A DNA stretch of 64,000 nucleotides. Origin: Haliotis cracherodii. Its lineage: Eukaryota. This document shows positions 13,515-54,246 of the stretch, in pieces. The stretch is from NCBI RefSeq assembly GCF_022045235.1, contig NW_027266272.1, positions 25,544,001 through 25,608,000 of the forward strand, in the 5' to 3' direction. Under the pieces are notes generated by a model. It saw only the letters and a program-made list of their open reading frames with translations. It searched no databases and was not told where the DNA came from. Position 1 is the stretch's first letter, and every line of letters starts with the position of its first letter. The position numbers were made by a program, and so were the translations under genes.

Positions 13515-14097
13515 TTTCACTAAATCCTACGCTGGACGTTCTACGTGTTCTGAACAAGGCGGTGTGGTTCCTCCTTACTGATAAAAAGCATGTTTTTTCT
13601 AAGCGCTGACTGAATAAATATTCTGATCGATGCTCATGATATCAATCATGGGATAGTCTGGTCCAGGCTCGATTATTTACCGCCATCATAAAGTTCGAAT
13701 ATTGCTGAGCGTGGCGTTAAATACAATGCAAACAAAGATTATTGTTAAAACCCAGGTGAAATACATGACACAATATACTTGTAAACACTAACATCGTATT
13801 TGTTTCCTTGTATTGGTTTTGCATTCAGATCAGAGCTTCCTGATTTGATCAACTTTTGAGTGAGTGAGTGAGTGAGTTGGGTTTAACGTCGCTTTTAACA
13901 GTATTCCAGTTATATCACGACGTGTCATGTGGGAGGAAAGCCCGAACTGATGCAGGTCGAAGACGTTTACCACTTCGGTGACAATGTACTATGAATCTGT
14001 AGGACATACTGGTGACAGTCAGCATGATTAGATTAGACCTTGCAAATGAACAAAATGCTAACAGAGATATGGGCAGAATATTATATGGACGGTCCCT

Positions 14098-14313: not shown

Positions 14314-15252
14314 ATGGTCCATCAATTCGTCGTCGCTGTGTGTGTGGTGTTGGGGCTCGCCTCTCACCAGGTGCGTGCTCAGTGGTGGGGCATGGGTCAA
14401 GGTCAAGGTCAGGGTATGGGTATGGGTCAAGGTCAGGGTATGGGTCAACTTGGAGGATTAGGTGGCGGTGCGTTTGCTCAAGGAGGAGGAGGGTGGGGGA
14501 ACAATCTCTTCCAACCGTTGAGGCCCAGTGTGCAAGACAACACCCTGTACCAGACCTGTATCGCCAAGAACTCCAACGGCGATGACATGAGGGTCACCTT
14601 CAGCCTTGGCAACAACAACAACAACAACTTCAACAACCCCATGTTTAACCGATTCGGTGGAGCCCGTAGCCTTCGTCTCTCAGCTGTCATCGCTTCCAAC
14701 CCTGCTTCGACTCTCCAAGGTCAGTTCCAGTTGGTCGTCACTGAATTCTCCCGCACTGAAGAAGTGTGTTCCAGTCGTGCTCTCGGCGACATCCTGACCG
14801 ACCGTGCCTGGTGGAGCCAGTCCCGTACTCCCCGCGGCATCGTTGGCACCCCCGTCACCATCTCCCAGGGACAGACCGCCACCTCCTCTGAGACCGTGGA
14901 GAACCTGGCCTTTGAGGAGCTGACCGGCCGTGGACTGGCTCTGTGTCCCTCTCACCAGATCTCTGGTTCCACCTGCATGGACGTCATCCCTCTGTGCTGC
15001 AAGATCGGCTTCGACAGTCAGGCTGCCACCACCTCTTTCACAGCCCAGAACCAGCTCTTCGGCCAGGGACTTCTCGGCATGCAGAACCCAGGTAGCAATA
15101 ACGGTTTGGGAGGTGGATTCAATCAAGGAATGGGCGGACAGTCTCAGGGAATGAACCAGGGACTCCCTTCAGGACTGAACGGAGGATTTGGTCAAGGTGG
15201 ACTCCCCTCAAACAACGCTGGTTCCCCCAACATGGGAGGACTAGGGTTTTGA
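14314..15252 (+). CDS. Secreted Gly/Gln/Asn-rich protein with Cu/Zn-SOD-like (metal-ligand-less) domain, paralogue 1 (312 aa, intronless)
   Basis: Uninterrupted, relatively GC-rich ORF with AAAATGG start context. Signal peptide [30 protein letters not shown] at 14241, AATAAA at 15553. Six close paralogues in the window. The SOD-like call comes from manual motif alignment. Confidence 0.93.
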   Translation: [312 protein letters not shown]

Positions 15253-16988
15253 AACATTGAGGTAGCTTAGAGGCAACATCACCGTGGACTCACAGTGTAA
15301 CAGAAGTCACCCATCACATGTACACTAATAGTTTCCATGGTGTGAAATATCGTTTTATCAAACTGCATGTTTTGGAGAAATTGTACGAACTATTATGTTA
15401 GTATATAACGCCGCAGACTAAACTAAGTTTTTTAAAGTTTCTTTCAAAATTTATCGTATATCAGTGCGCAAGATATGTTAATCAGCTGAGCTTTGTTCAC
15501 AAACTTGTATGAATGTATTTATTGCAAGGCAGGTTCTTGTGTGGTTGAATGTAATAAATTATCCTACATATTAAATCCTTGTGTGTATTTTGGGGATGAT
15601 TTGAGTGAGTGACGTTTCACGACGCTTTTAGCACTATTCCATCAACATCACGGTCAGGACACAAGAATTGAGCCTCGGATAGGTCAATAAATTGTGGGAA
15701 TAAACGATACGACTAATTTCAACAGTACTCGTTTCCGAGATGCGGAAATAATACTTCGTGCATCTTCCCGAGGCAAGTGAGTTAACGGACTTAAAAAGTC
15801 CAGTTTCCACCCTTGCCGAACTAGGCTGGTATTATGAAGTTACATTTTGACTGGAGTAACGAGTTTATGCACAGTCCAATCAAAATCACGCAACGAAATC
15901 GAAATCTGGTTCGTAAACTGTCGCGCAGATTTCGGTCAATACCAGGATTTGCAAAGCATGTACACCGCCAGGTCGTTGTCAACAGATATTTTCTAAACCT
16001 TTTCATGTTTTTAATCCAGGTGCTCACGTGATGTGAATTGTGATGCACTTCGCGATGTAAGACCCGTTTTATCACAATATAGATCTTGATTATCGATCAG
16101 ATCGTCCTGACTGGGCGCCACCGTTTTGTTTGAAAAAAAATGCAAGTGATGGAATCTAATTGGTCCATAGGACAGGCTTAGAATGGATATAACTCGTAAT
16201 AACCGTCGTCATATAGCTGGAATATATCTGAGTGCTGCGTTAAACTTCAAACTTCGATTGACGTAAATACGCTAATGTGTGGTTATTTCGGGCCCGATAA
16301 AGCAAAGAGCAACCTACTTGTTCATGAACTTGTTTACTCACATTTTTTCATGAAGTGAGAATCTCCATGTAAAATCCTTGTAATGTGGTTAGTCACCACA
16401 GCATATATGAGCTGCCACGTCTGCGCCGACCATCAGGGCATTGCGGGCAAACAGGGAACTTGCGTAGCACGTGCTTTTCGAGACACTAAAGTGAACACTT
16501 GTCTCTCGACTGCTTGGATCAAAATAGAATATCTGCGCGCCACCCTGATCAATTTTTACATCCGAAGAAAATGTGGATTTTATTTGCTAGGCTTTTTGGG
16601 TGGAAACCTCCCCACGGCCCCACCCTCCCCCAACGAACAACAAAACAACAACAACAGAAACAACAAAACAACCCCCCCCCCCAAAAAAAGAAAAAAAAGA
16701 AGAGTAAATTGTACACTGAACATGCTGGATTTCGTTTGATGTTCAACGCTGCACTCAACATATTCCAACCACATCACCGCGGCCTGGAATAATCGAAACT
16801 GTCCCAGGCGAAAGAGTGGTTGATATTATGAGCAACTCCCCACACCATCGGGGTACGATGACACTAAATGAACCAAGCCACCGGGTTTGACCCCCCAATC
16901 CAACTGACTCGCCTCTCTATGATCAGCGTTAGGGAGCTAGGAGCTGTTCTAAACCTGTGCCCTACGGGTAAATGTAGCAGTCGTATTT

Positions 16989-19066: not shown

Positions 19067-19984
19067 CTAGAAGGAGAGTCGCATGTTTTGGGAGCCAGCG
19101 TTGTTTGAGGGGAGTCCACCTTGACCAAATCCTCCGTTCAGACCTGAAGGGAGTCCCTGGTTCATTCCCTGAGACTGTCCGCCTCCTATTCCCTGGTTGA
19201 ATCCACCTCCCAAACCGTTGTTGCTACCTGGGTTCTGCATGCCGAGAAGTCCCTGGCCGAAGAGCTGGTTCTGGGCTGTGAAAGAGGTGGTGGCAGGCTG
19301 ACTGTCGATGCCGATCTTGCAGCACAGAGGGATGACGTCCATGCAGGTGGAGCCAGAGATCTGGTGAGAGGGACACAGAGCCAGTCCACGGCCGGTCAGC
19401 TCCTCGAAGGACAGGTTCTCCACGGTCTCAGAGGAGGTGGCGGTCTGTCCCTGGTAGATGGTGACGGGGGTGCCCACGATGCCGCGGGGAGTACGGGACT
19501 GGCTCCACCAGGTACGGTCGGTCAGGATGTCGCCGAGAGCACGACTGGAACACACTTCTTCAGTGCGGGAGAATTCAGTGACGACCAACTGGAACTGACC
19601 TTGGAGTGTTGAAGCAGGGTTGGAAGCGATGACAGTTGAGAGACGCAGACTTCGGGATCCACCGAATCGGTTAAACATGGGGTTGTTGAAGTTGTTGTTG
19701 TTGTTGCCAAGGCTGAAGGTGACCCTCATGTCATCGCCGTTGGAGTTCTTGGCGATACAGGTCTGGTACAGGGTGTTGTCTTGCACACTGGGCCTCAACG
19801 GTTGGAAGAGATTGTTCCCCCACCCTGCTCCTCCTTGAGCAAACGCACCGCCACCTAATCCTCCAAGTTGACCCATACCCTGACCTTGACCCTGACCTTG
19901 ACCCATGCCCCACCACTGAGCACACACCTGGTGAGAGGCGAGCCCCAACACCACACACACAGCGACGACGAGTTGATGGACCAT
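19067..19984 (-). CDS. Paralogue 2 (305 aa, ends GSQNMRLSF)
   Basis: True start is the ACCATGG Met (MVHQL) at 19984. The upstream extension in the ORF track begins at a non-ATG codon and runs through the TATA box. Minus-strand AATAAA at 18885-18890. Confidence 0.93.
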   Translation of the reverse strand: [305 protein letters not shown]

Positions 19985-24849: not shown

Positions 24850-25782
24850 CTAGAAGGAGAGTCGCATGTTTTGGGAGCCAGCGTTGTTTGAGGAGAGTCC
24901 ACCTTGCCCAAATCCTCCGTTCAGTCCTGAAGGGAGTCCCTGGTTCATTCCCTGAGACTGTCCGCCTCCTATTCCCTGGTTGAATCCACCTCCCAAACCG
25001 TTGTTGTTACCTGGGTTCTGCATGCCGAGAAGTCCTTGGCCGAAGAGCTGGTTCTGGGCTGTGAAAGAGGTGGTGGCAGGCTGACTGTCGATGCCGATCT
25101 TGCAGCACAGAGGGATGACGTCCATGCAGGTGGAGCCAGAGATCTGGTGAGAGGGACACAGAGCCAGTCCACGGCCGGTCAGCTCCTCAAAGGACAGGTT
25201 CTCCACGGTCTCAGAGGAGGTTGCGGTCTGTCCCTGGTAGATGGTGACGGGGGTGCCAACGATGCCGCGGGGAGTACGGGACTGGCTCCACCAGGTACGG
25301 TCGGTCAGGATGTCGCCGAGAGCACGACTGGAACACACTTCTTCAGTGCGGGAGAATTCAGTGACGACCAACTGGAACTGACCTTGGAGAGTTGAAGCAG
25401 GGTTGGAGGCGATGACAGCTGAGAGACGAAGGCTACGGGCTCCACCAAATCGGTTAAACATGGGGTTGTTGAAGTTGTTGTTGTTGTTGCCAAGGCTGAA
25501 GGTGACCCTCATGTCATCGCCGTTGGAGTTCTTGGCGATACAGGTCTGGTACAGGGTGTTGTCTTGCACACTGGGTCTCAAAGGTTGGAAGAGATTGTTT
25601 CCCCACCCTCCAGCTTGACCTTGACCTTGTCCCATGCCAAGCGCACCGCCACCTAATCCTCCAAATTGACCCATACCCTGACCTTGACCCTGACCTTGAC
25701 CCATGCCCCACCACTGAGCACACACCTGGTGAGAGGCGAGCCCCAACACCACACACACAGCGACGACGAGTTGATGGACCAT
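24850..25782 (-). CDS. Paralogue 3 (310 aa, ends GSQNMRLSF)
   Basis: Intact ORF from ACCATGG at 25782, with signal peptide and six-Cys domain. Candidate minus-strand AATAAA at 24491-24496. Confidence 0.93.
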   Translation of the reverse strand: MVHQLVVAVCVVLGLASHQVCAQWWGMGQGQGQGQGMGQFGGLGGGALGMGQGQGQAGGWGNNLFQPLRPSVQDNTLYQTCIAKNSNGDDMRVTFSLGNNNNNFNNPMFNRFGGARSLRLSAVIASNPASTLQGQFQLVVTEFSRTEEVCSSRALGDILTDRTWWSQSRTPRGIVGTPVTIYQGQTATSSETVENLSFEELTGRGLALCPSHQISGSTCMDVIPLCCKIGIDSQPATTSFTAQNQLFGQGLLGMQNPGNNNGLGGGFNQGIGGGQSQGMNQGLPSGLNGGFGQGGLSSNNAGSQNMRLSF

Positions 25783-27774: not shown

Positions 27775-30420
27775 TTGGTATTACTTTCTGTGTTTAATAA
27801 TGTCTTCTTTGACTTCGTGTGTAAGCAGAATATTATCTGTTTAACCCAAACGTGGAAAAATGTTCAGATGACTTTAAGTTTGTTTTTTCCTGATTTCATT
27901 TCATTACAGTCAGTTCGACCTAAAGAGAAGAGGGCAGGTCGCTGCAGTGGAGGTGTCGCAGTATATGTTAGTGGTAAACTTTCATCGTATTTTTCAAGGA
28001 TACATGACGAATGGGTTGACTGTGTTTTTCTTGTATCCAGTGATGTATCCTGACACTGATACAAATATATATCAAATACAGCCCATGCAAGTCTACATTA
28101 CTGCAGTATCTGAAAATGAAGAGAGTCACTGGGCTCCCTTTTGTTATATTTTTATTAAGATAACTGAACAACTGTTTTTTCTGCACGATATGTTCATTTC
28201 AGACACTAGATGTTAGTCTACTGAGGGCATTGAAATTTTAGAAACTTTTCTTGCAGTGCTCATAGACGAAATCCCGGAAAATGACTTCATCTTGTGTGGT
28301 AACTTTAATAGTAGAACTCGAACCGAATTCGATTATATTGGTTTTGATGCAGTTGATCATCTACCAATGGATGATATTGTGTATGAACAGAATGACAGCC
28401 CTGAAGAGCGAAAGAACAAGGACCAAGTAGTTAGAGACCAAGTATTAGAGCAACATGTGTTAGCTCACCATGTTATATGTGTGTGTCAGCATCCATTTAC
28501 AAGTATGTAGAGGTCTTTAAAGGTATAAGTCGCACTGAGTCTGGCCATCTTCCCATATTTGCTTCTTTCTCATCATTGTTTAATGTAGTATACACTCTAG
28601 AACAGCCTAGGTGAGGCCAGGGGTAGATATACATGGAACGCGGATAAGAGTGGAGACTATATGAATAATTTTGAAAGTGAATTAGTGCAAGAAATGTTAA
28701 ATTAATTTATTACCTGTGTGGAAATTGATGTTGATAAAGCCGCAGAGAAGTTACAGCATATAATGCAATACTGTGGAAGGAATATGAAAGTAAAGTTGTC
28801 CAAGTATATAGGCTTAAAGAAACAATCAGAATGGTTTGATGAAGAGTGTGAACACTTGAAGAGAGAAAAGTATAAACTCTTGAATACATTCAGAAAGGTT
28901 TCTTCTCCGGAAAACTATAACTTATACAAGAACATTAGAAACAAATGTAAATCTTTATGTAAACAAAAACAGACTAATTTTAAGCAGAGCATTAGTGAAT
29001 GCTGCGAATGATAGTAACTGTACAACATTTTGGAGACTTGTGTAACGGTATATCACCTCAAGCTCGCAGGACTCTGGCATCGCACCTGCAACTTGGGTAG
29101 ATTAGATCGTGTGATTTTATCGAACAAGATGTGGTAAACACTCTTCATCATTTAAAGTATGGAAAATCACCTGGTGATGATGGACACCCACCAGAATTGT
29201 ACAAATCTGTTGAAAATGTATTAACTCCATATCTTGTCATTTTGTTTAATGCAGTGTTGTCCAGTGGACATTACCCAAAATTATGGTCAACGGGAATAAT
29301 AATGCCACTGCATAAAAAAAGGTAGTAAAAGTGATCCTAATAACTTACGTGGTATATCACTTCTCAATATAATGGGTAAAATGTTTTCTTATATTTTGAG
29401 GCATAATTTGTGAATATCAAGGGGGGTCTAAGAAAGATCATACCACTATTGATAACATTTTCAATTTACAAGCTATTATACAAAAGTATATCACTCGCAA
29501 AAAGGAAAAGTATATTGCGCTTTTATTGATTTTAGAAAAAAACCCATTTGATATGGTTAATAGGAGTAAGTTAATGTGTTATTTATTGCAAAATGGTATT
29601 CATGGCAAGTTTTTATGTATTATCCAGAGTATGTATAATCATGTTAAAGCAACTGTAACATACGATTATGGCAAGAAAATTACTGAGTATTTTGATAGTT
29701 CATGTGGGTTAAGACAAGGTTGTACTCTTAGTCCAGTACTGTTTTCTTTATTAATCAACGAATTAGTTATATGTTTGGAAAGTAAATTCCAGGATGGTGT
29801 TTTTATCTCAGAGGAAATGTTAAATATAATTTCCCTATTGTTTGCCGACCATTTAATACTTGTTGCAAACAGTGTATTAAAATTACAAAAACGTCTTGAT
29901 GAATTACATTTATACTCTTATAAATGGGGTATGGATATTAATACTGAGAAAAGTAAAATTATTGTGTTTAAAATGGGAGCACCCTTGTCAAAAAATGAGA
30001 AATGGTATTATAACGGTGAACGGATGAAAACAGTTAATTCCTATAAATATTTGGGACTTAATTTCATTCCCAAATTAATTTGGACTAAGGCCTGTAAAAC
30101 TTTATGCGAGCAAGCAAACAAGGCACTTTGATCAGTTAAATCATTGATACGACGTTATGACATTTCGGTTACGGAAGTATTCTTTATATTTGATAAAAAA
30201 ATTGTACCAATATTACTGTATGATGCTGAGATTTGGGGATACCAAAAATGGAATACGATTGAAATTGTTCACCGCAAATTTTGTAAAATTGCAAATACTG
30301 TAGCCTATGGTGAATGTGGCAGGTATCAACTTCATACTTTTTATCATGTAAAATACATAAAAATATTGGTCTAAGAATTTGAATATGAGCCCAAACAGAT
30401 ACCCAAACCAGTGTTATAAG
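27775..30420 (+). mobile_element. Decayed non-LTR retrotransposon ORF2 (APE endonuclease + RT), RTE-X/CR1-like
   Basis: Fragments ICLTQTW, GRCSGGVAVYV, ILCGNFNSRT, GKSPGDDG, GLRQGCTLSPVLF, LLFADHLIL, YKYLG, ILLYDAEIWG, AYGECGRY. Many stops and frameshifts. MITE inserted at ~28045-28220. Clade assignment is tentative. Confidence 0.85.
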
Positions 30421-30852: not shown

Positions 30853-31785
30853 CTAGAATGAGAGTCGCATGTTTGGGGAGCCAGCGTTGTTTGAGGGGAG
30901 TCCACCTTGACCAAATCCTCCGTTCAGTCCTGAAGGGAGTCCCTGGTTCATTCCCTGAGACTGTCCGCCGCCCATTCCCTGGTTGAATCCGCCTCCCAAA
31001 CCGTTGTTGCTACCTGGGTTCTGCATGCCGAGAAGTCCCTGGCCGAAGAGCTGGTTCTGGGCTGTGAAAGAGGTGGTGGCAGGCTGACTGTCGATGCCGA
31101 TCTTGCAGCACAGAGGGATGACGTCCATGCAGGTGGAGCCAGAGATCTGGTGAGAGGGACACAGAGCCAGTCCACGGCCGGTCAGCTCCTCGAAGGACAG
31201 GTTCTCCACGGTCTCAGAGGAGGTGGCGGTCTGTCCTTGGTAGATGGTGACGGGGGTGCCCACGATGCCGCGGGGAGTACGGGACTGGCTCCACCAGGTA
31301 CGGTCGGTCAGGATGTCGCCGAGAGCACGACTGGAACACACTTCTTCAGTGCGGGAGAATTCAGTGACGACCAACTGGAACTGACCTTGAAGAGTTGAAG
31401 CAGGGTTGGAGGCGATGACAGCTGAGAGACGAAGGCTACGGACTCCAACAAATCGGTTAAACATGGGGTTGTTGAAGTTGTTGTTGTTGTTGCCAAGGCT
31501 GAAGGTGACCCTCATGTCATCGCCGTTGGAGTTCTTGGCGATACAGGTCTGGTACAAGGTGTTGTCTTGTACACTGGGTCTCAACGGTTGGAAGAGATTG
31601 TTTCCCCACCCTCCAGCTTGACCTTGACCTTGACCCATGCCAAGCGCACCGCCACCTAATCCTCCAAATTGACCCATACCCTGACCTTGACCCTGACCTT
31701 GACCCATGCCCCACCACTGAGCACACACCTGGTGAGAGGCGAGCCCCAACACCACACACACAGCGACGACGAGTTGATGGACCAT
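30853..31785 (-). CDS. Paralogue 4 (310 aa, ends GSPNMRLSF)
   Basis: Intact ORF from ACCATGG at 31785. Minus-strand AATAAA at 30647-30652. Confidence 0.93.
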   Translation of the reverse strand: MVHQLVVAVCVVLGLASHQVCAQWWGMGQGQGQGQGMGQFGGLGGGALGMGQGQGQAGGWGNNLFQPLRPSVQDNTLYQTCIAKNSNGDDMRVTFSLGNNNNNFNNPMFNRFVGVRSLRLSAVIASNPASTLQGQFQLVVTEFSRTEEVCSSRALGDILTDRTWWSQSRTPRGIVGTPVTIYQGQTATSSETVENLSFEELTGRGLALCPSHQISGSTCMDVIPLCCKIGIDSQPATTSFTAQNQLFGQGLLGMQNPGSNNGLGGGFNQGMGGGQSQGMNQGLPSGLNGGFGQGGLPSNNAGSPNMRLSF

Positions 31786-31929: not shown

Positions 31930-32479
31930 CCAGATGATTGTCCCAATTAAGCCTTGAGGTTATGTTAATGTAGGCTCACTCTATTTGTACCCATCCTTAC
32001 AACATACCTATAGTTAAGTGGCCGACCCCATTTGTTTGCTAATGAATTCACAAGGCAGCACTTTCTTTACACTAACATATAGTCCCTGAAATAAAGTTTT
32101 TGTATACGTTTGAATAAAAATAATAAAATACCCGTCGAGCATGAAGGTCGTTTTCTTATGAAATCACATTAATAACTTGTTCTTATTATTTATATTATTT
32201 AGAAAATATTAATCTGAAGAGCTAAATAGGATGAGTATAGGCTAGAGAAGGGGAAGAGTGGAATGAAGATCAAATATGTATTAAATATACCTAATGTGAC
32301 CTGTAAGAGAGATTACACTTTCTTATGTAAGCCGCCTTTTTTCTATCTGATCCATATTTTCAATATATCAATGATTTCGGTTATTTCATTGTACACCTGA
32401 GGACCAATTATTTTTTTCAAGCATTTTCAGTAATGGAATATTTCTTTCTAGCACCCTCACGAGTTATCATTATCATTAG

Positions 32480-33740
32480 GCTGTATGGATATAATGAAGA
32501 TACCTACCTATTTGATAACATGCTGTATGAATATAATGAAGATATCTTCCTATTTGATAACATGCTGTACGAATATAATGAAGATATCTACCTATTTGAT
32601 AACATGCTGTATGAATATAATGAAGATATCCACCTATATGATAACATGATGTACGAATATAATGAAGATATCTACCTATTTGATAACATGCTGTATGAAT
32701 ATAATGAAGATATCCACCTATATGATAACATGCTGTACGAATATAATGAAGATATCTACCTATTTGATAACATGCTGTATGAATATAATGAAGATATCCA
32801 CCTATATGATAACATGATGTACGAATATAATGAAGATATCTACCAATTTGATAACATGTTGTATGGATATAATGAAGATATCTACCTATTTAGTAAGATG
32901 CTGTATGAATATAATGAAGATATCTACCTATATGATAACATGCTGTATGAATATAATGAAGATATCTACCTATATGATAACATGTTGTATGGATATAATG
33001 AAGATATCTACCTATTTGATAACATGCTGTATGAGTATAATGAAGACATCTACCTATATGATAACATGATGTATGAATATAATGAAGATATCTACCTATT
33101 TGATAACATGCTTTTTGAATATAATGAAGATATCTACCTTTATGGTAACATGCTGTATGGATAAAATGAAGATATCAATCTCATTAAAATCAGATCTTAG
33201 TTCTCGCTGCCGCTAAACAAAGATCTGAGGACATCCCATTACGGGTCACGTCAGAACGACCTTTCGCGAACCTTGACCGACCACTGAAATGACTAACAAG
33301 AAGTCTGTATGTTGTATGGATATAATGAAGATATCCACCTAAATGATAACATGTTGTATGGGTATAATGAAGATATCTACCTATATGATAACATGTTGTA
33401 TGGATATAATGAAGATATCCACCTAGATGATAACATGTTGTATGGGTATAATGAAGATACCTACCTATATGGTAACATGTTGTATGGATATAATGAAGAT
33501 ATCCACCTAAATGATAACATGCTGTATGGATATAATGAAGATACCTACCTATATGATAACATGTTGTATGGATATAATGAAGATATCTACCTATATGGTA
33601 ACATGTTGTATGGATATAATGAAGATACCTACCTATATGATAACATGCTGTATGGGTATAATGAAGATATCTACCTATATGATAACATGCTGTATGGATA
33701 TAATGAAGATATCTACCTATATGGTAACATGCTGTATCTG
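32480..33740. repeat. 42-bp minisatellite, subarray A
   Basis: Unit atctacctatatgataacatgctgtatggatataatgaagat. Interrupted by a MITE fragment at 33176-33305. Confidence 0.95.
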
Positions 33741-33742
33741 TA

Positions 33743-35860
33743 ATGCCTACCTGTATTGCAACGTGTTGTATGGATAGAAGGACAATGCCTACCTGTATTG
33801 TAACGTGGTGTATGGAGAGAAGGACAATACCTACCTGTATTGTAACGTGGTGTATGGAGAGAACGACAATGCCTACCTATATTGTAATGTGTTGTATGGA
33901 CAGAAGGAATATACCTACCTGTATTGTAACATGTTGTAGGGAGAGAAGGAATATGCCTACCTGTATTGTAACGTGGTGTATGGACAGAAGGAATATACTT
34001 ACCTGTATTGTAACGTGGTGTATGGACAGAAGGAATATACCTCCCTGTATTGTAACGTGGTGTATGGAGAGAAGGAATATACCTACCTGTATTGTAACGT
34101 GGTGTATGGACAGAAGGAATATACCTACCTGTATTGTAACATGGTGTATGGACAGAAGGAATATACCTACCTGTATTGTAACGTGTTGTAGGGAGAGAAG
34201 GAATATACCTACTTGTATTGTAACGTGGTGTATGGACAGAAGGAATATACCTACCTGTATTGTAACGTGGTGTATGGACAGAAGGAATATACCTCCCTGT
34301 ATTGTAACGTGGTGTATGGAGAGAAGGAATATACCTACCTGTATTGTAACGTGGTGTATGGACAGAAGGAATATACCTACCTGTATTGTAACATGGTGTA
34401 TGGACAGAAGGAATATACCTACCTGTATTGTAACGTGTTGTAGGGAGAGAAGGAATATACCTACCTGTATTTTAACGTGTTGTAGGGAGAGAAGGAATAT
34501 ACCTACCTGTATCGTAACGTGGTGTATGGAGAGAAGGAATATACCTACCTGTATTGTAACGTGGTGTATAGATAGAAGGACAATGCCTACCTGTATTTTA
34601 ACGTGGTGTATGGAGGGAAGGAATATACCTACCTGTATTTTAACGTGTTGTATAGATAGAAGGACAATGCCTACCTGTATTGTAACGTGGTGTATGGACA
34701 GAAGGAATATACCTACCTGTATTGTAACGTGTTGTATAGATAGAAGGACAATGCCTACCTGTATTTTAACGTGGTGTATGGAGAGAAGGACAATGCCTAC
34801 CTGTATTGTAACGTGGTGTATGGACAGAAGGAATATACCTACCTGTATTGTAACGTGGTGTATGGAGAGAAGGAATATACATACCTGTATTGTAACGTGT
34901 TGTATAGATAGAAGGACAATGCCTACCTGTATTTTAACGTGGTGTATGGAGGGAAGGAATATACCTACCTGTATTGTAACGTGGTGTATGGAGAGAAGGA
35001 CAATGCCTACCTGTATTGTAACGTGGTGTATGGACAGAAGGAATATACCTAGCTGTATTGTATCGTGGTGTATGGAGAGAAGGACAATGCCTACCTGTAT
35101 TGTAACGTGGTGTATGGAGAAAAGGACAATGTCTACCTGTATTGTAACGTGGTGTATGGAGGGAAGGAATATACCTACCTGTATTGTAACGTGGTGTATG
35201 GAGAGAAGGACAATGCCTCCCTGTATTTTAACGTGGTGTATGGAGGGAGGGAATATACCTACCTGTATTGTAACGTGGTGTATACATAGAAGGACAATGC
35301 CTCCCTGTATTGTAACGTGGTGTATGGAGAGAAGGAATATACCTACCTGTATTGTAACGTGGTGTATAGACAGAAGGAATATACCTACCTGTATTGTAAC
35401 GTGGTGTATGGAGAGAAGGACAATGCCTACCTGTATTGTAACGTGGTGTATGGAGAAAAGGACAATGCCTACTTGTATTGTAACGTGGTGTATGGAGAAA
35501 AGGACAATGCCTACCTGTATTGTAACGTGGTGTATGGACAGAAGGAATATACCTACCTGTATTGTAACGTGGTGTATGGAGAGAAGGACAATGCCCCCCG
35601 TATTGTAACGTGTTGTATGGACAGAAGGACAATGCCTCCCTGTATTGTAACGTGTTGTATGGACAGAAGGAATAAACCTACCTGTATTGTAACGTGGTGT
35701 ATGGAGAGAAGGAATATACCTACTTGTATTGTAACGTGTTGTATAGATAGAAGGACAATGCCTACCTGTATTTTAACGTGGTGTATGGAGGGAAGGAATA
35801 TACCTACTTGTATTGTAACGTGTTGTGTGGATACAAGGACACTACCTACCTATATGGAAA
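33743..35860. repeat. 42-bp minisatellite, subarray B (~50 units)
   Basis: Unit acctacctgtattgtaacgtggtgtatggacagaaggaatat. Confidence 0.95.
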
Positions 35861-36242
35861 CAGCTTATATTTTTGTACCTGGGTGTTTCGTAATTTCCTG
35901 TTCGAAGAGGCTATCAAATTCTTTCATGTTTCGTTTGTAAATGGCGAAATTAAAACGGGTTGTACAAAGCCGTCTTTAAACTATCATTAACTAATAGCAC
36001 TTTAAGTATATAATTTTCATTACCGCGTAATTCAATTAGAGTATTCCTCCATCATGTTCCATACAATTTCGTATTAGCAAACAAATAAGTTTGTGCAACG
36101 CAGAAAGTTTCAACTTCAGACCCCTGTATTTTATCAACGTATTAGCGCATATTATTAGGCATGTGTGGATTATTAAATGGTAGATAAATGGTACTTCAAA
36201 ACCCCCATTAATGTAATGACCCGTTATGGTGTTATTGAAAGT

Positions 36243-37016: not shown

Positions 37017-37946
37017 TCAAAACCCTAGTCCGCCCATGTTAGGGGAGCCAGCGTTGTTTGAGGGGAGTCCACCTTGACCAAATCCTCCGTTCAGTCCTGA
37101 AGGGAGTCCCTGGTTCATTCCCTGAGACTGTCCGCCGCCCATTCCCTGGTTGAATCCACCTCCCAAACCGTTGTTGCTACCTGGGTTCTGCATGCCGAGA
37201 AGTCCCTGGCCGAAGAGCTGGTTCTGGGCTGTGAAAGAGGTGGTAGCAGGCTGACTGTCGAAGCCGATCTTGCAGCACAGAGGGATGACGTCCATGCAGG
37301 TGGAGCCAGAGATCTGGTGAGAGGGACACAGAGCCAGTCCACGGCCGGTCAGCTCCTCGAAGGACAGGTTCTCCACGGTCTCAGAGGAGGTGGCGGTCTG
37401 TCCTTGGTAGATGGTGACGGGGGTGCCCACGATGCCGCGGGGAGTACGGGACTGGCTCCACCAGGTACGGTCGGTCAGGATGTCGCCGAGAGCACGACTG
37501 GAACACACTTCTTCAGTGCGGGAGAATTCAGTGACGACCAACTGGAACTGACCTTGGAGTGTTGAAGCAGGGTTGGAAGCGATGACAGTTGAGAGACGCA
37601 GACTTCGGGATCCACCGAATCGGTTAAACATGGGGTTGTTGAAGTTGTTGTTGTTGTTGCCAAGGCTGAAGGTGACCCTCATGTCATCACCGTTGGAGTT
37701 CTTGGCGATACAGGTCTGGTACAGGGTGTTGTCTTGCACACTGGGTCTCAACGGTTGGAAGAGATTGTTCCCCCACCCTCCAGCTTGACCTTGACCCATG
37801 CCAAACGCACCGCCACCTAATCCTCCAAGTTGACCCATACCCTGACCTTGACCCTGACCTTGACCCATGCCCCACCACTGAGCACACACCTGGTGAGAGG
37901 CGAGCCCCAACACCACACACACAGCGACGACGAGTTGATGGACCAT
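37017..37946 (-). CDS. Paralogue 5 (309 aa, ends GSPNMGGLGF like paralogue 1)
   Basis: Intact ORF from ACCATGG at 37946 with the same architecture. Confidence 0.93.
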   Translation of the reverse strand: MVHQLVVAVCVVLGLASHQVCAQWWGMGQGQGQGQGMGQLGGLGGGAFGMGQGQAGGWGNNLFQPLRPSVQDNTLYQTCIAKNSNGDDMRVTFSLGNNNNNFNNPMFNRFGGSRSLRLSTVIASNPASTLQGQFQLVVTEFSRTEEVCSSRALGDILTDRTWWSQSRTPRGIVGTPVTIYQGQTATSSETVENLSFEELTGRGLALCPSHQISGSTCMDVIPLCCKIGFDSQPATTSFTAQNQLFGQGLLGMQNPGSNNGLGGGFNQGMGGGQSQGMNQGLPSGLNGGFGQGGLPSNNAGSPNMGGLGF

Positions 37947-43495: not shown

Positions 43496-44410
43496 CTAGA
43501 ATGCGAGTCGCATGTTTGGGGAGCCAGCGTTGTTTGAGGGGAGTCCACCTTGACCAAATCCTCCGTTCAGTCCTGAAGGGAGTCCCTGGTTCATTCCCTG
43601 AGACTGTCCGCCGCCCATTCCTTGGTTGAATCCACCTCCCAAACCGTTGTTGCTACCTGGGTTCTGCATGCCGAGAAGTCCCTGGCCGAAGAGCTGGTTC
43701 TGGGCTGTGAAAGAGGTGGTAGCAGGCTGACTGTCGAAGCCGATCTTGCAGCACAGAGGGATGACGTCCATGCAGGTGGAGCCAGAGATCTGGTGAGAGG
43801 GACACAGAGCCAGTCCACGGCCGGTCAGCTCCTCGAAGGACAGGTTCTCCACGGTCTCAGAGGAGGTGGCGGTCTGTCCTTGGTAGATGGTGACGGGGGT
43901 GCCCACGATGCCGCGGGGAGTACGGGACTGGCTCCACCAGGTACGGTCGGTCAGGATGTCGCCGAGAGCACGACTGGAACACACTTCTTCAGTGCGGGAG
44001 AATTCAGTGACGACCAACTGGAACTGACCTTGGAGAGTTGAAGCAGGGTTGGAGGCGATGACAGCTGAGAGACGTAGGCTACGGGCTCCACCGAATCGGT
44101 TAAACATGAGGTTGTTGAAGTTGTTGTTGTTGTTGCCAAGGCTGAAGGTGACCCTCATGTCATCGCCGTTGGAGTTCTTGGCGATACAGGTCTGGTACAG
44201 GGTGTTGTCTTGTACACTGGGTCTCAACGGTTGGAAGAGATTGTTCCCCCACCCTCCAGCTTGACCTTGACCCATGCCACCTAATCCTCCAAGTTGACCC
44301 ATACCCTGACCTTGACCCTGACCTTGACCCATGCCCCACCACTGAGCACACACCTGGTGAGAGGCGAGCCCCAACACCACACACACAGCGACGACGAGTT
44401 GATGGACCAT
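43496..44410 (-). CDS. Paralogue 6 (304 aa, ends GSPNMRLAF)
   Basis: Intact ORF from ACCATGG at 44410. Candidate minus-strand AATAAA at 42963-42968. Confidence 0.93.
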   Translation of the reverse strand: MVHQLVVAVCVVLGLASHQVCAQWWGMGQGQGQGQGMGQLGGLGGMGQGQAGGWGNNLFQPLRPSVQDNTLYQTCIAKNSNGDDMRVTFSLGNNNNNFNNLMFNRFGGARSLRLSAVIASNPASTLQGQFQLVVTEFSRTEEVCSSRALGDILTDRTWWSQSRTPRGIVGTPVTIYQGQTATSSETVENLSFEELTGRGLALCPSHQISGSTCMDVIPLCCKIGFDSQPATTSFTAQNQLFGQGLLGMQNPGSNNGLGGGFNQGMGGGQSQGMNQGLPSGLNGGFGQGGLPSNNAGSPNMRLAF

Positions 44411-47131: not shown

Positions 47132-47855
47132 TAGAGGTAGATAACACTGACGATCAGAGGTAGATGATACTGACGACGTAGGAGTACATAACACTGATGA
47201 TGTAGAGGTAGATAACACTGACGATGTAGGAGTAGATAACTAGGACGATGCATTGGTAGATAGCACTGACGATGTAGGAGTAGATAACACTGACGATGGA
47301 GTGGTAGATAACACTGACGATGTAGGAGTAGATAACTAGGACGATGCAGTGGTAGATAACACTGACGATGCATAGGAAGATAACACTGACGATGTAGGAG
47401 TAGATAACACTGACGATGTAGGAGTAGATAACACTGACGATGTAGGTGTAGATAACACTGACGATGGAGTGATAGATAACACTGACGATGTAGGTGTAGA
47501 TAACACTGACGATGCATAGGAAGATAACACTGACGATGTAGGAGTAGATAACACCGGCGATAATGTGGTAGATGACACTGACGATGCGGTGGTAAATGAC
47601 ACTGACGATGAAGTGGTAGATGACACTGAAGATGAAGTGGTAGATGACACTGAAGATGAAGTGGTAGATGACACTGACGATGAAGTGGTAGGTGACACTG
47701 GCGATGAAGTGGTAGATAACACTGACGATGAAGTGGTAGGTGACACTGAGGATGCAGTGGTACATGACACTGACGATGCAGTGGTAGATGACACTGACGA
47801 TGCAGTGGTAGATAACACTGACGATGAATTGGTAGATGACACCGATGATGCAGGG
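47132..47855. repeat. 24-bp minisatellite (~30 units)
   Basis: Unit gtagataacactgacgatgtagga, drifting to gtagatgacactgacgatgaagtg. Confidence 0.95.
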
Positions 47856-47968
47856 GTAAAGTAAAGGAGTTTCTATGAAGTCATTCAATCCTGCTTCTTT
47901 ATTAGTATTGCTCACTCTTCCCTATAGATGACAGGTTATTATCATCGTGAGAGGTTCTCTACAAAATC

Positions 47969-49447: not shown

Positions 49448-50956
49448 ATGGTCCATCAAATCGTCGTCGCTCTGTGTGTGGTGATAGGCCTCGCCTCTCA
49501 ACAGGTATTCGCTCAGTGGTCGGGCATGGATCAGAGTCAGGGTCAAGGTCTTGGTCAAGGTCAGATGGGAGAATTAGGCACAAGTGCGTGGGGCACAAAC
49601 CAAGGTCAAGGTTTCCGCCAAGGACAAGATCAGTTAGGAGGATGGAACAGCGGTGCGTGGAACATGGGCCAGGGTCAAGGATTTGGTCAAGGTCTGGGTC
49701 AAGGCCAAAGTCAGTTTGGAGGATGGGGCGGTGCTTTGGGCATGGGACAAGGAGGAGGATGGGGACAAGCGTCACCTGCTGGTTTAGGAATGGGAGGCAT
49801 GGGACAAGGAGGAGGATGGGGACAAGCGTCACCTGCTGGTTTAGGAATGGGAGGCATGTTCCAACAGGAACCTAACCAGTATCAGACCTGCATCGCCAAG
49901 AACTCAAATGGGGACGAGATGAGAGTCACCTTCAGCAGCAGCAACAACAACCCGTGGTTTGGAAACCAATTTGGCAACGCCTTGCGTCTCACTGCTCGCA
50001 TCTCCTCCAACCAAGCTGCAACTCTCCAAGGTCAATTCCAGTTGGTCGTCACTGAATTCTCCCGCACTGAGGAGGTGTGTTCCAGCCGTGCTCTCGGCGA
50101 CATCCTGACCGACCGTACCTGGTGGAGCCAGTCCCGTACTCCCCGCGGCATCGTGGGCACCCCCGTCACCATCAACCAGGGACAGACCGCCACCTCCTCT
50201 GAGACCGTGGAGAACCTGGCCTTCGAGGAGCTGACCGGCCGTGGACTGGCTCTGTGTCCCTCTCACCAGATCTTTGGGTCTACCTGCAGGGACGTCATCC
50301 CTCTGTGCTGCAAGATCGGCTTCGACAGTCAGCCTGCCACCACACCATTCACCGCCCAGAACCAGCTCTTCGGCCAGGGACTTCTCGGCATGCAGAACCC
50401 AGGTAGCAACAACGGTTTGGGAGGCGGTTTCGGCCAGAGGATGCCCGGAGGGATGGGAGGTGTCTTTAATACCGACGTTGGAAGGACCGCAACAATCGAC
50501 GGTAACATGAACACTGCAGGTGGGCTAGGTTTGAACCAAGGACCTCAAGCAGGTATGAACCAGAGGCTCCCCTCCGGAATGAACGGCGGTATGAACCAGG
50601 GACTCCCCTCCGGAATGAACGGCGGTATGAACCAGGGACTCCCCTCCGGAATGAACGGCGGTATGAACCAGGGACTCCCATCCGGAATGAACGGCGGTAT
50701 GAACCAGGGACTCCCATCCGGAATGAACGGCGGTATGAACCAGGGACTCCCCACCGGAATGAACGGCGGTATGAACCAGGGACTCCCCTCCGGCATGAAC
50801 GGCGGTATGAACCAGGGACTCCCCTCCGGAATGAACGGCGGTATGAACCAGGGACTCCCCTCCGGAATGAACGGCGGTATGAACCAGGGACTCCCCTCCG
50901 GAATGAACGGCGGTATGAACCAGGGACCCCCCTCCGGGTTGAACGGCGGTTTCTAG
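49448..50956 (+). CDS. Paralogue 7, long divergent form (502 aa) with expanded N-arm and 11 x 12-aa C-terminal repeat
   Basis: ACCATGG start and signal peptide MVHQIVVALCVVIGLASQQVFA|Q. Same six-Cys domain. TATAA at 49387, AATAAA at 51040. Confidence 0.93.
   Translation: MVHQIVVALCVVIGLASQQVFAQWSGMDQSQGQGLGQGQMGELGTSAWGTNQGQGFRQGQDQLGGWNSGAWNMGQGQGFGQGLGQGQSQFGGWGGALGMGQGGGWGQASPAGLGMGGMGQGGGWGQASPAGLGMGGMFQQEPNQYQTCIAKNSNGDEMRVTFSSSNNNPWFGNQFGNALRLTARISSNQAATLQGQFQLVVTEFSRTEEVCSSRALGDILTDRTWWSQSRTPRGIVGTPVTINQGQTATSSETVENLAFEELTGRGLALCPSHQIFGSTCRDVIPLCCKIGFDSQPATTPFTAQNQLFGQGLLGMQNPGSNNGLGGGFGQRMPGGMGGVFNTDVGRTATIDGNMNTAGGLGLNQGPQAGMNQRLPSGMNGGMNQGLPSGMNGGMNQGLPSGMNGGMNQGLPSGMNGGMNQGLPSGMNGGMNQGLPTGMNGGMNQGLPSGMNGGMNQGLPSGMNGGMNQGLPSGMNGGMNQGLPSGMNGGMNQGPPSGLNGGF
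50552..50947 (+). repeat. Coding tandem repeat, 11 x 36 bp (GMNQGLPSGMNG)
   Basis: 396 bp = 11 x 36 bp. Unit ggtatgaaccagggactcccctccggaatgaacggc. Confidence 0.95.
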
Positions 50957-52787: not shown

Positions 52788-54246
52788 TACTAAACAACAA
52801 AAGTTCCTGTGACATTGAATAAGATTTAATGCAAAGTTATGTTTTTTACCAAATCTGAAACAATTTCGGTGTGCAACAGATAAAAAACTCCTGTAAGTGT
52901 TCACATGGTTTAATTTGCCATACTGACTTCAGAAAATGCGTGATTTCATAAAAAAACATGAACATGCCAAAATGTCAATTTACAAATCAATAGCGTGTGT
53001 GTCCACCTCTGGTTGCGATGCAAGCAAGTCATCTTCGCCTCATGGAATGGACCAGGTGTCGCACAAAGTCCTGTGGGGTATCTGTCCATATCTGCTGGAG
53101 CATGTTTCGAAGTTCCTGGAGTGTCTGTAGAACACGTGGTTGACGTCGAAGGCGCCGATCCATCTCATCCCACATGTGCCCGATTGGTGAGAGATCAGGG
53201 GAGCGAGCCGGCCAGGGCTGACATTCACGTTGTTTTGTTGAAGAGAATCCTGAACAAGTCGAGCAATATGAGGCCGGGCGTTGTCATGTTGAAAGGTAAT
53301 GCCTGGGCCCTGACGGCGCAAAAACGGTAGAACAACAGGGCCAATGATCTCGTCGCGGTAGCGCTGTCCATTGAGATTTCCCTCTACCACTATCAAACGG
53401 GTCCCCTGTCTTGCTATAATCCCATTACATACCATAACGCTGCCGCCCCAGAACCGATCTTCTTCCATGACACGATGATTGACGTAACGTTCACCTCGAC
53501 GTCGGTACACTCGAATCCGTTCATCGTTGTGGTTGAGGTGAAAACGAGACGCTGTCTGCACTACTGTAGACGTGTTTGACGGTGGTTTCCTGTCAAAATG
53601 GGATGTCTGGCGGGTCTTCTGGCGACAATCCCTGCACATCTGAGGCGACGGCGTACGGTTTGTGAAGATATTCGTCGAAGGCCAGGGATGCTTCTGCAGT
53701 CACTGTTGCTGGCTGGAATCGATTTCGTAGGTGAATTGTTCGAATCCAGTTGTCTTGTCGATTATTGGTAACGCTTGGCCTGCCACTCCGAGGATGGTCT
53801 CTGACTGCATTCGCCTGTTGCCAACGTTGCCATAAACACCAAATGGTGTTTCTGTGGACGTTAAATTTTCTTGCAACATCACGTTGACTCGATCCTGCTT
53901 CAAGCATACCAATGGCTCGCAGACGCTAATTTTTGGACAGGCGTGGCATTTCGTAATGTTGAATAATTGCGAAATTTGGTTGTTTTTCTGAGTGGTTGTC
54001 AGCACGATGCTGAACAATGCATATGGAATCCCGTTAACGCACATGTTTTTATACCCATTCTTGGGTAGTGAAATACATGGGGCTTGCATAAAAGTCGACT
54101 TGGAATGCATGGAATGCATGCTTTTCTAAGGCAGTTGCGTTTTTGTGACTTGTTCCATACATGTACTACAATATTGAAAACCAAACTTTACTTGTTTGAA
54201 AAATACACTAAAGTATTGGTGTCACAGGAACTTTTGTTGTTGAGTA
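52788..54246 (-). mobile_element. Second, different Tc1-family transposon; transposase pseudogene ~53949-52987
   Basis: TIRs tact(a/c)aacaacaaaagttcctgtgaca flanked by TA. Motifs RSGRPSVT, GGSVMV, FQHDNARPH, GGHTRY. Frameshifted. Confidence 0.9.

Follow-up and report, generated by a model that had tools for sequence, protein, structure and literature searches.

The stretch of DNA analysed here, 64,000 nucleotides of the abalone Haliotis cracherodii (assembly GCF_022045235.1, contig NW_027266272.1, forward-strand positions 25,544,001 to 25,608,000), is called the window at its full length below, and positions are counted from its first letter. Its set of open reading frames (ORFs) contains seven intact, intronless paralogues, two on the plus strand and five on the minus strand, whose central domain is predicted to have the fold of copper/zinc superoxide dismutase (SOD) without its metal sites. 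Each paralogue encodes a signal peptide and then a core of about 160 residues, with six Cys and a single His, that stands between a first arm, rich in Gly, Gln, Asn and Met, and a second one. Paralogue 1 (14314..15252, plus strand) is a complete intronless gene for 312 residues, which comprise a 23-residue hydrophobic leader with Ala-Gln as its last residues (14314-14382), a 47-residue N-terminal arm of Gly, Gln and Met (14383-14523), the 169-residue SOD-fold core (14524-15030), and a 73-residue C-terminal arm of Gly, Gln, Asn and Met (15031-15249, with the stop codon after it), all on the plus strand. Residue numbers given for the core are those of this paralogue. Within the core, positions 14548-15015 (plus strand) give a stop-free translation of 156 residues with exactly six Cys and one His. 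A first-pass annotation of the window, made from the letters alone, had described a domain of about 155 residues with six invariant Cys and one His, lying between two low-complexity arms in seven paralogues, and this description was confirmed; the six Cys were invariant in 13 sequences from Haliotis and other vetigastropods. Together with the intact reading frames, such conservation is far more than chance would give.

The five minus-strand genes are paralogue 2 (19067..19984, core 19289-19792; 305 residues counted from the ATG), paralogue 3 (24850..25782, core 25072-25575; 310 residues), paralogue 4 (30853..31785, core 31075-31578; 310 residues), paralogue 5 (37017..37946, core 37242-37745; 309 residues) and paralogue 6 (43496..44410, core 43718-44221; 304 residues). 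Paralogue 7 (49448..50956, core 49856-50341, plus strand; 502 residues) is the most divergent and has much longer arms, with about 13 repeats of a 12-residue Gly/Met/Asn/Gln unit in the C-terminal one. The cores of the other window paralogues were 86-96% identical to that of paralogue 1, and all six Cys were kept. Six of the window copies differ from one another by a synonymous divergence (dS) of the core of 0.03-0.11, and the seventh differs from them by about 0.25. Because the ratio of nonsynonymous to synonymous divergence of the core (dN/dS) was 0.07-0.41 among the window copies, we conclude that the core is under purifying selection; the gene copies are intact. When the whole assembly was searched with the core, an eighth tandem copy was found about 2 kilobases past the end of the window and, elsewhere in the genome, three more full paralogues, with identities of 77, 65 and 54%, as well as a distant paralogue, L012 (35% identity over the core), and two exon-like fragments. 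L012 (L012:577-1764, plus strand; G000:C10 near 3.21 megabases) has a long N-terminal arm of Gly/Phe/Val repeats and almost no C-terminal arm. The exon-like pieces L013:1366-1713 and L014:1477-1710 (G000:C34 near 10.35-10.37 megabases) represent two further paralogues and match proteins P0026 and P0027; both end inside loop IV, which implies an intron within the core, unlike the intronless copies in the window. In contigs of a public run from a related species (X2), a depth of 6,000-43,000 was confined to the ORF and was zero in the unique sequence just upstream, a pattern that looks like that of an abundant transcript, contig depth being a poor measure of abundance.

The fold of the core was examined by structure prediction. 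With an alignment of 13 sequences AlphaFold2 produced an eight-strand sandwich (predicted local distance difference test, pLDDT, 74; predicted template-modelling score, pTM, 0.71), and with 59 sequences the identical eight-strand topology was obtained at a pLDDT of 90.5 and a pTM of 0.84. In the 59-sequence model the strands run from residues 9-15, 21-28, 50-57, 66-73, 106-113, 118-125, 137-142 and 157-164, and an Asn-rich insertion of about 15 residues, predicted with low confidence, lies between strands 2 and 3. When both models were compared with the PDB by Foldseek, the top 50 matches were all Cu/Zn SODs, CCS or the SOD-like clock protein EA4; their E values ranged from 4e-6 to 9e-4 at a probability of 1.00, and their template-modelling scores from 0.54 to 0.76. 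A structural scan independent of Foldseek, carried out with VIA-align over 48,161 representative chains, gave Z scores of 10.7-14.1 for 14 chains, each a member of the SOD superfamily and aligned over 114-142 residues, and 6.5 for the next unrelated chain. The best of these was domain II of CCS complexed with SOD1 (6fp6_B, Z 14.1, 137 residues aligned, root-mean-square deviation 2.9), followed by SOD1 itself (5yto_G, Z 13.6, 133 residues, 2.6), the Cu-only SOD5 (4n3t_A, Z 12.9), SOD3 (2jlp_A, Z 12.8, 142 residues, 3.2) and, at Z 10.7, a SOD-like protein of Bacillus subtilis (1s4i_B). The structural alignments were collinear, model residues 7-165 corresponding to SOD1 residues 1-153. In the ESM Atlas, all 30 named neighbours carried PF00080, with a score of 0.92 and 188-193 of 256 features in common. 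The predicted structures thus show an eight-stranded Greek-key beta-barrel of the SOD type, with the strand order and loop placement of SOD. Both the SOD fold proposed in the first-pass annotation and its hand alignment to SOD1, which had been collinear across the domain, were supported by these results: the AlphaFold2 barrel found its best matches in the PDB solely among Cu/Zn SODs, CCS domain II and EA4, and strand order and spacing agreed.

The same annotation had named a HMMER comparison with the Pfam family Sod_Cu as a check, and this check failed. None of 59 members matched Sod_Cu (PF00080, curated cut-off 28.9 bits) at E≤1, and neither the window protein nor 12 further relatives matched it at E≤10. 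When the genome was scanned in six frames with PF00080, 24 SOD exons or domains were detected, among them those of the canonical Haliotis SOD1 gene, which is split into exons, and none at the window paralogues. Searches of the PDB sequences with the family profile (hmmsearch) and with phmmer gave no match, NCBIfam gave no link to SOD, and hhalign comparisons with SOD profiles, namely a small alignment of mollusc and fungal SODs and a 16-sequence alignment including 12 bacterial SodC genes, gave non-significant E values of 0.1-0.6. The global mode of hhalign mis-paired the halves of the barrel and was therefore not used for the residue register. Since all profile methods were non-significant, the link to SOD lies at the level of the fold, with support from shared motifs and none from sequence statistics. 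Likeness at the level of motifs was seen in Gly-Arg-x-Leu-x-x-(His to Cys), before and through strand 7, and in Glu-Phe after strand 4. Identity to SODs in the structural alignments was 6-20%, and Greek-key sandwiches are common; together with the lack of a significant profile link, these observations would fit a barrel that merely converges on the SOD topology and is in fact another disulfide-rich, immunoglobulin-like sandwich. We consider such convergence quite improbable, however, as it would have to account for the sharp gap between the 14 SOD-superfamily chains (Z≥10.7) and other sandwiches (Z≤6.5), for a full-length collinear alignment, for a disulfide at a SOD-specific position, for the retention of the strand 7 and Glu-Phe motifs, and for language-model neighbours that are solely PF00080.

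Catalysis by SOD requires the copper ligands His46, His48, His63 and His120, the zinc ligands His63, His71, His80 and Asp83, and Arg143 as a guide. To place these positions in the core, the strands of the model were paired one for one with those of SOD1, whose strand boundaries served for the comparison, and the offset was constant within each strand. In both the core (Glu74-Cys82) and SOD1 (Glu49-Cys57), the Glu that follows strand 4 is 8 residues ahead of the next Cys. The Gly-Arg preceding strand 7 coincides with that of SOD1, as does the hydrophobic-Gly pattern of strand 8, and the register agrees with the predicted dimer interface described below. Residues were counted by column in an alignment of the cores of 54 relatives. 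At the end of strand 4 the sequence Val71-Val72-Thr73 (14734..14742, plus strand) places Val71 at the position of His46 and Thr73 at that of His48; the first of these columns holds Val in 42 of 54 sequences, the second Thr in 48 of 54, and neither holds His in any. The position of His63 is taken either by Gly88, present in all 54, or by the variable next residue 89 (Asp, Pro, Arg or Asn), and that of His120 by Cys141 (51 of 54). In Ile155-Pro-Leu-Cys158-Cys159 (14986..15000, plus strand), where the Cys-Cys pair marks the start of strand 8, Ile155 stands at the position of Arg143, a column that is Ile in 34 of 54 and otherwise Val or Tyr. In the window proteins the zinc loop, from Cys82 to strand 5, contains no His; the core has a single one, His144, which is not conserved, and no column of the family contains more than six His. 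Between the positions of His120 and Arg143, loop VII is reduced to 13 residues, compared with 22 in SOD1. The first-pass claim that every metal ligand has gone thus held up, the corresponding residues being Val, Thr, Gly (or Asp), Cys and Ile, with no conserved His column. As judged from the modelled register, the core is unable to rebuild the copper site, the zinc site or the Arg143 guide, and because no residue rebuilds them it would be unable to work as a SOD. We are confident that the barrel, as modelled, is SOD-like in fold and catalytically dead. An active SOD or another redox enzyme using unconventional ligands would have nothing beyond the fold in its favour, whereas all Cu and Zn ligands and Arg143 are replaced across the family by non-ligating residues, the lone His is not conserved and the Cys are best explained as disulfides; we regard this possibility as extremely improbable.

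Pairing of the six Cys was examined by covariation in the 54-sequence alignment, in which 41 relatives contained all six. Cys12 (14557..14559, plus strand), on strand 1 at the position of SOD1 Cys6, and Cys159 were lost jointly in all six informative relatives, and no relative lacked just one of them; these losses fall into about three lineages, namely a group with Ala12 and Gly or Ala at 159, a Gigantopelta protein and a Lymnaea protein. Cys141, at the end of strand 7, and Cys151, in the shortened loop VII (14944..14976 for the segment from one to the other, plus strand), were present in 51 and 52 of 54 relatives, respectively, and were replaced together in P0069; His144 sits between them. 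Cys82 (14767..14769, plus strand), the equivalent of SOD1 Cys57, and Cys158 were each present in 53 of 54 members, and their pairing was assigned by elimination, because the other two bonds had been assigned by co-loss, and by position. As read from these patterns, the map C12-C159, C82-C158 and C141-C151 is very probably correct. Within it there is good support for C82-C158 as the putative ancestral SOD bond, equivalent to C57-C146 of SOD1, for C12-C159 as a predicted bond between strands 1 and 8, and for C141-C151 as a candidate family-specific bond from the former His120 position to loop VII. The last of these would tie the His120 position to the shortened loop and would therefore close the old active-site pocket. 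The pairing of the N-terminal Cys with the second Cys of the Cys-Cys pair, and of the LALC Cys with the STC Cys, had both been put forward in the first-pass annotation and now have support from co-loss, six times out of six for the former and once for the latter. Together, C12-C159 and C82-C158 would resemble the two-disulfide pattern of SOD3.

Prediction of a core homodimer with ESMFold2 gave an interaction prediction score from aligned errors (ipSAE) of 0.74, compared with 0.00 for the best of three controls; at least 90% of contacts were common to the runs, and the partner had a pLDDT of 82. In calibration, the mark applied to such scores was reached by 21 of 30 solved one-chain pairs and by none of 23 solved single chains. 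The predicted interface comprises residues 10-15, 74-80, 134-137 and 159-166. By register these are the dimer segments of SOD1, which lie on strands 1 and 8, where loop IV starts, and at the Gly-Arg that precedes strand 7. The most conserved residues other than Cys lie on or near it: the Gly-Arg-Gly ahead of strand 7, with Gly135 (53 of 54) and Gly137 (48 of 54), Asp164 (50 of 54), Arg77, and Thr73/Glu74. On the basis of these models we lean slightly towards a core that forms a homodimer through the SOD1-type face. A second use for such a face can be envisaged, in which the barrel serves real extracellular SODs as partner or decoy, heterodimerising through the SOD face with an active Cu/Zn SOD or with a Cu-only repeat protein so as to anchor, stabilise or regulate that enzyme within a matrix that the arms would form. 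Among structures, after all, the best match is a CCS domain II complexed with SOD1, the predicted interface is the docking face of SOD1 and CCS and carries the most conserved residues of the family, and the genome encodes several SOD genes of the secreted type as well as a four-domain Cu-only SOD repeat protein. The homodimer alone, however, accounts for the conserved face, and at least eight near-alike tandem genes and an apparently high transcript abundance (in one run) suit a bulk product better; moreover, the proteins have no CCS-like Cu-handling motif and no ATX1-like domain, and their Cys are accounted for as disulfides. A role as partner or decoy, including any anchoring or regulation of a SOD enzyme, therefore seems improbable to us.

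To define the range of the family, a profile of the core only was compared with 1.84 billion protein representatives, giving 58 cluster representatives at E≤1e-3 and 27 at E≤1e-10. Nearly all 58 are 200-450 residues long, and low-complexity sequence flanks or interrupts their core. For 20 of them the source name was looked up; every named one was a gastropod and none came from a bivalve. The genera named were Haliotis, Gigantopelta, Patella, Lottia, Littorina, Plakobranchus, Bulinus, Lymnaea and Physella, which cover five gastropod clades: vetigastropods, neomphalines, patellogastropods, caenogastropods and heterobranchs. Members are labelled in databases as 'uncharacterized', 'hornerin-like', 'fibroin heavy chain-like', 'elastin-like', 'collagen-like' or 'PE-PGRS-like', names that go back to the arms. 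A Lottia homologue, P0040, bears the source name 'Superoxide dismutase copper/zinc binding domain-containing protein', the basis of which was not reproduced by our Pfam scan. Identifiers of the family's genes and proteins and its invariant tryptic peptides were sought in the literature, and none was found. In many members across the gastropod clades (P0042-P0062 and the window paralogues) the C-terminus is Gly-Leu-Phe or a close variant; in others it is Gly followed by two basic residues, an amidation-type signal. These shared ends look like a conserved tag.

The composition of the arms differs by lineage, Gly being always high, Met often, and His, Tyr and Asp being abundant in some heterobranch members. 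The Met content of the arms is 6.7% in paralogue 1 and 10.2% in paralogue 7; among the 58 relatives its median is 5.75% and its maximum 20%, with 28 below 5% and several without any, so that only the richness in Gly is general. Four proteins of unnamed or heterobranch origin (P0071, P0072, P0054 and P0060) have arms and loop-IV inserts very rich in His, Gly, Tyr, Met or Asp, with up to 28 His in 290 residues, a composition that resembles those of proteins of sclerotised or metal-cross-linked tissues. Repeats of Met, Gly and His in this style bind Cu in bacterial proteins of the CopA/PcoA type and in Ctr1. The Met-enriched arms of the abalone proteins (and of relatives reaching the maximum above), together with the 15-28 His in the arms of some relatives, could thus be taken to mean that the arms bind Cu(I), Cu(II) or other metals, the His-rich ones doing so in heterobranchs, or that they act as sacrificial methionine antioxidants, with the barrel as carrier only. 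We hold this to be improbable, in that the enrichment in Met is not universal and no fixed Met or His motif is conserved.

An ordinary shell-matrix protein, low in complexity, silk-like and occluded in the nacre or the prismatic layer, would likewise be secreted, rich in Gly, Gln and Met, tandemly duplicated and lineage-restricted, and the composition found here resembles those of the Gly/Ala/Gln/Met-rich and Gln-rich shell proteins of Haliotis (PMC6003135). However, the family's invariant tryptic peptides and its motifs were not found in the supplements of an in-depth shell proteome of H. laevigata (28 files, 6.2 million characters), nor the Lottia homologue in those of a Lottia shell proteome (17 files), and the family is present in Plakobranchus, a shell-less sacoglossan. 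The shell-matrix explanation was accordingly rejected as the leading idea, and we rate it as distinctly improbable. Motifs of the family were also not found in the supplements of the Patella and Cornu mucus proteomes or of a gene-expression atlas of the Lymnaea mantle.

Several systems derived from SOD are known with which the gastropod family can be compared. With SOD1 and SOD3 it shares, in the models, an eight-strand Greek-key barrel that is collinear over the whole domain (Z 13.6 and 12.8, respectively), a disulfide at the Cys57-Cys146 position, the Gly-Arg before strand 7 and, by prediction, perhaps the dimer face; with SOD3 it further shares secretion and a Cys-Cys pair on strand 8 with a Cys on strand 1. 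In contrast to both, the gastropod core has no Cu ligands, no Zn ligands, no Arg143 and no Pfam match, and it has a 13-residue loop VII that would be stapled by a new disulfide, an Asn-rich insertion, and long arms on both sides. Domain II of CCS is a SOD-derived barrel that has lost catalysis and serves in protein docking through the SOD dimer face (PMC13017621), and it is the best single structural match of the gastropod core (6fp6_B). Human CCS domain II, however, is a cytosolic domain with about 50% identity to SOD1, which retains the Zn site and three of the four Cu histidines and has the Cu-binding domains I and III on its flanks (PMC13017621). Domain I of CCS is ATX1-like and domain III is of the CxC kind. 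In the gastropod protein, which is secreted, every ligand is gone and the flanks are a signal peptide and disordered arms with no Pfam domain. The YojM protein of B. subtilis (PDB 1s4i), among the 14 top matches at Z 10.7, likewise has a SOD fold with partial loss of the metal site, but as a lipoprotein of a bacterium it differs in that Sod_Cu still recognises it and in that arms and extra disulfides are lacking.

A 2026 review of SOD derivatives covers CCS, the fungal Cu-only SODs, the animal Cu-only SOD repeat proteins (CSRPs), some of which are Cu-less, and oyster dominin, and contains no family of the present kind (PMC13017621). Dominin and the CSRPs are extracellular, SOD-derived proteins without SOD activity that are believed to have taken on different extracellular roles (PMC13017621, PMC6530089), a description that the gastropod family would fit if its residues are read as above. 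The CSRPs are chains of 4-12 Cu-only SOD-like domains joined by very short linkers (PMC13017621), whereas each gastropod protein has a single barrel, low-complexity arms, three predicted disulfides and no SOD similarity at the profile level. Dominin, in contrast, is still recognised as Cu/Zn SOD-like and is reported to bind metals. We conclude that dead derivatives of SOD are already known and that the gastropod family is a new, widespread and architecturally distinct variant of them.

The abalone genome also contains a candidate member of one of these systems. An intronless ORF of 649 residues (L015:1357-3306, minus strand; G000:C80:517077-520445) encodes four SOD-like domains, of which domains 2 and 4 keep the equivalents of His46, His48, His63 and His120, the disulfide and the Arg and have no Zn-loop histidines, and domains 1 and 3 are degenerate; it looks like an abalone CSRP. 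When SOD relatives were sought with a Haliotis Cu-only SOD domain as the query, mostly fragments were returned. A contig labelled as a metagenome-assembled genome of Acidobacteriaceae (L035) carries a stretch 45% identical to a mollusc Cu-only SOD domain with stops in its translation, and it is probably eukaryotic sequence, possibly with introns, that contaminates a bacterial bin.

Other features of the window lie between or beside the paralogues. Long stop-free ORFs at 32433-35940 (plus strand) and 47154-47915 (minus strand) consist of short tandem repeats, minisatellite-like, and are almost certainly not genes; a strong skew of G against C was seen at 34-36 kilobases, within the first of them. 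Paralogue 1 is flanked by repeats (12914-14053 and 15764-16200) that were, in each of the four runs, 1,000-100,000 times as deep as unique sequence. The consensus at their loose ends is tRNA-like (GGTTCGATCC-type box), and they are probably short interspersed nuclear elements. The ORFs 29526-30131 (plus strand) and 53040-53639 (minus strand) resemble, by eye only, a reverse-transcriptase fragment and a transposase of the Tc1/mariner type, respectively, which suggests that transposon debris lies between the paralogues.

We propose that the product of these genes would be a secreted protein in which a signal peptide is followed by a disordered arm rich in Gly, Gln, Asn and Met, a Greek-key barrel of the SOD type, and a second disordered arm. 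Three disulfides would lock the barrel, closing the old active-site pocket, and two barrels would pair through the SOD1-type face to give a rigid, oxidation-proof dimeric knot that displays four floppy, low-complexity arms. The arms might stick to each other or to a matrix, and the protein would then help to build an abundant extracellular gel or material as its cross-linking unit. A structural or cross-linking role of this kind is put forward tentatively, as something short of an even chance.

Several observations and limits weigh against this proposal in one part or another. No sequence-profile method ties the family to SOD, and common ancestry with SOD would rest on predicted structure, language-model features and motif-level likeness. 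The register of the ligands was taken from strand boundaries, fixed spacings and the predicted interface rather than from a printed structural alignment. The putative C141-C151 bond is backed by one co-loss event only, and in L012 Thr replaces Cys82, the Cys57 equivalent, with the Cys-Cys pair kept; the number of Cys in L012 is therefore odd, so that a free thiol or an intermolecular bond is possible. The score of the dimer may reflect the model's memory of solved SOD1 dimers, and only one of seven true eukaryotic pairs without an older solved relative reached the mark. As to function, the structural role is conjectural, and peptides or motifs of the family were not found in the supplements of the shell and mucus proteomes or of the mantle atlas. 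With these points set against the structural matches and the replaced ligands, the proposal as a whole, weighted most to the claims of fold and dead site, is in our view probably the best explanation of the family.

Cu/Zn SOD is among the most studied enzymes. The boldest form of the proposal, which we offer as a possibility and hold to be doubtful, is that the family is an undescribed extracellular building block of gastropods: a metal-free, triple-stapled, dimerising SOD barrel with low-complexity arms of interchangeable kind, made of Gly/Gln/Asn/Met in abalone and either of Gly/Tyr/His/Met or rich in Asp in heterobranchs. The arms would determine how a major secreted material behaves, for instance a gel, an adhesive, or a mouthpart or cuticle that is sclerotised, and the SOD template would have met a third fate, in addition to that of CCS and that of the Cu-only SODs and repeat proteins. 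If the metal-free, disulfide-locked dimer is real, it would show how an enzyme fold comes to be reused as a structural connector, would give a fold to dozens of gastropod proteins now called 'uncharacterized', 'hornerin-like', 'fibroin-like' or 'elastin-like', and would point to an apparently abundant secreted material. The family would also be a natural experiment in the folding of SOD without metal, and as such may bear on research into the stability of SOD1.

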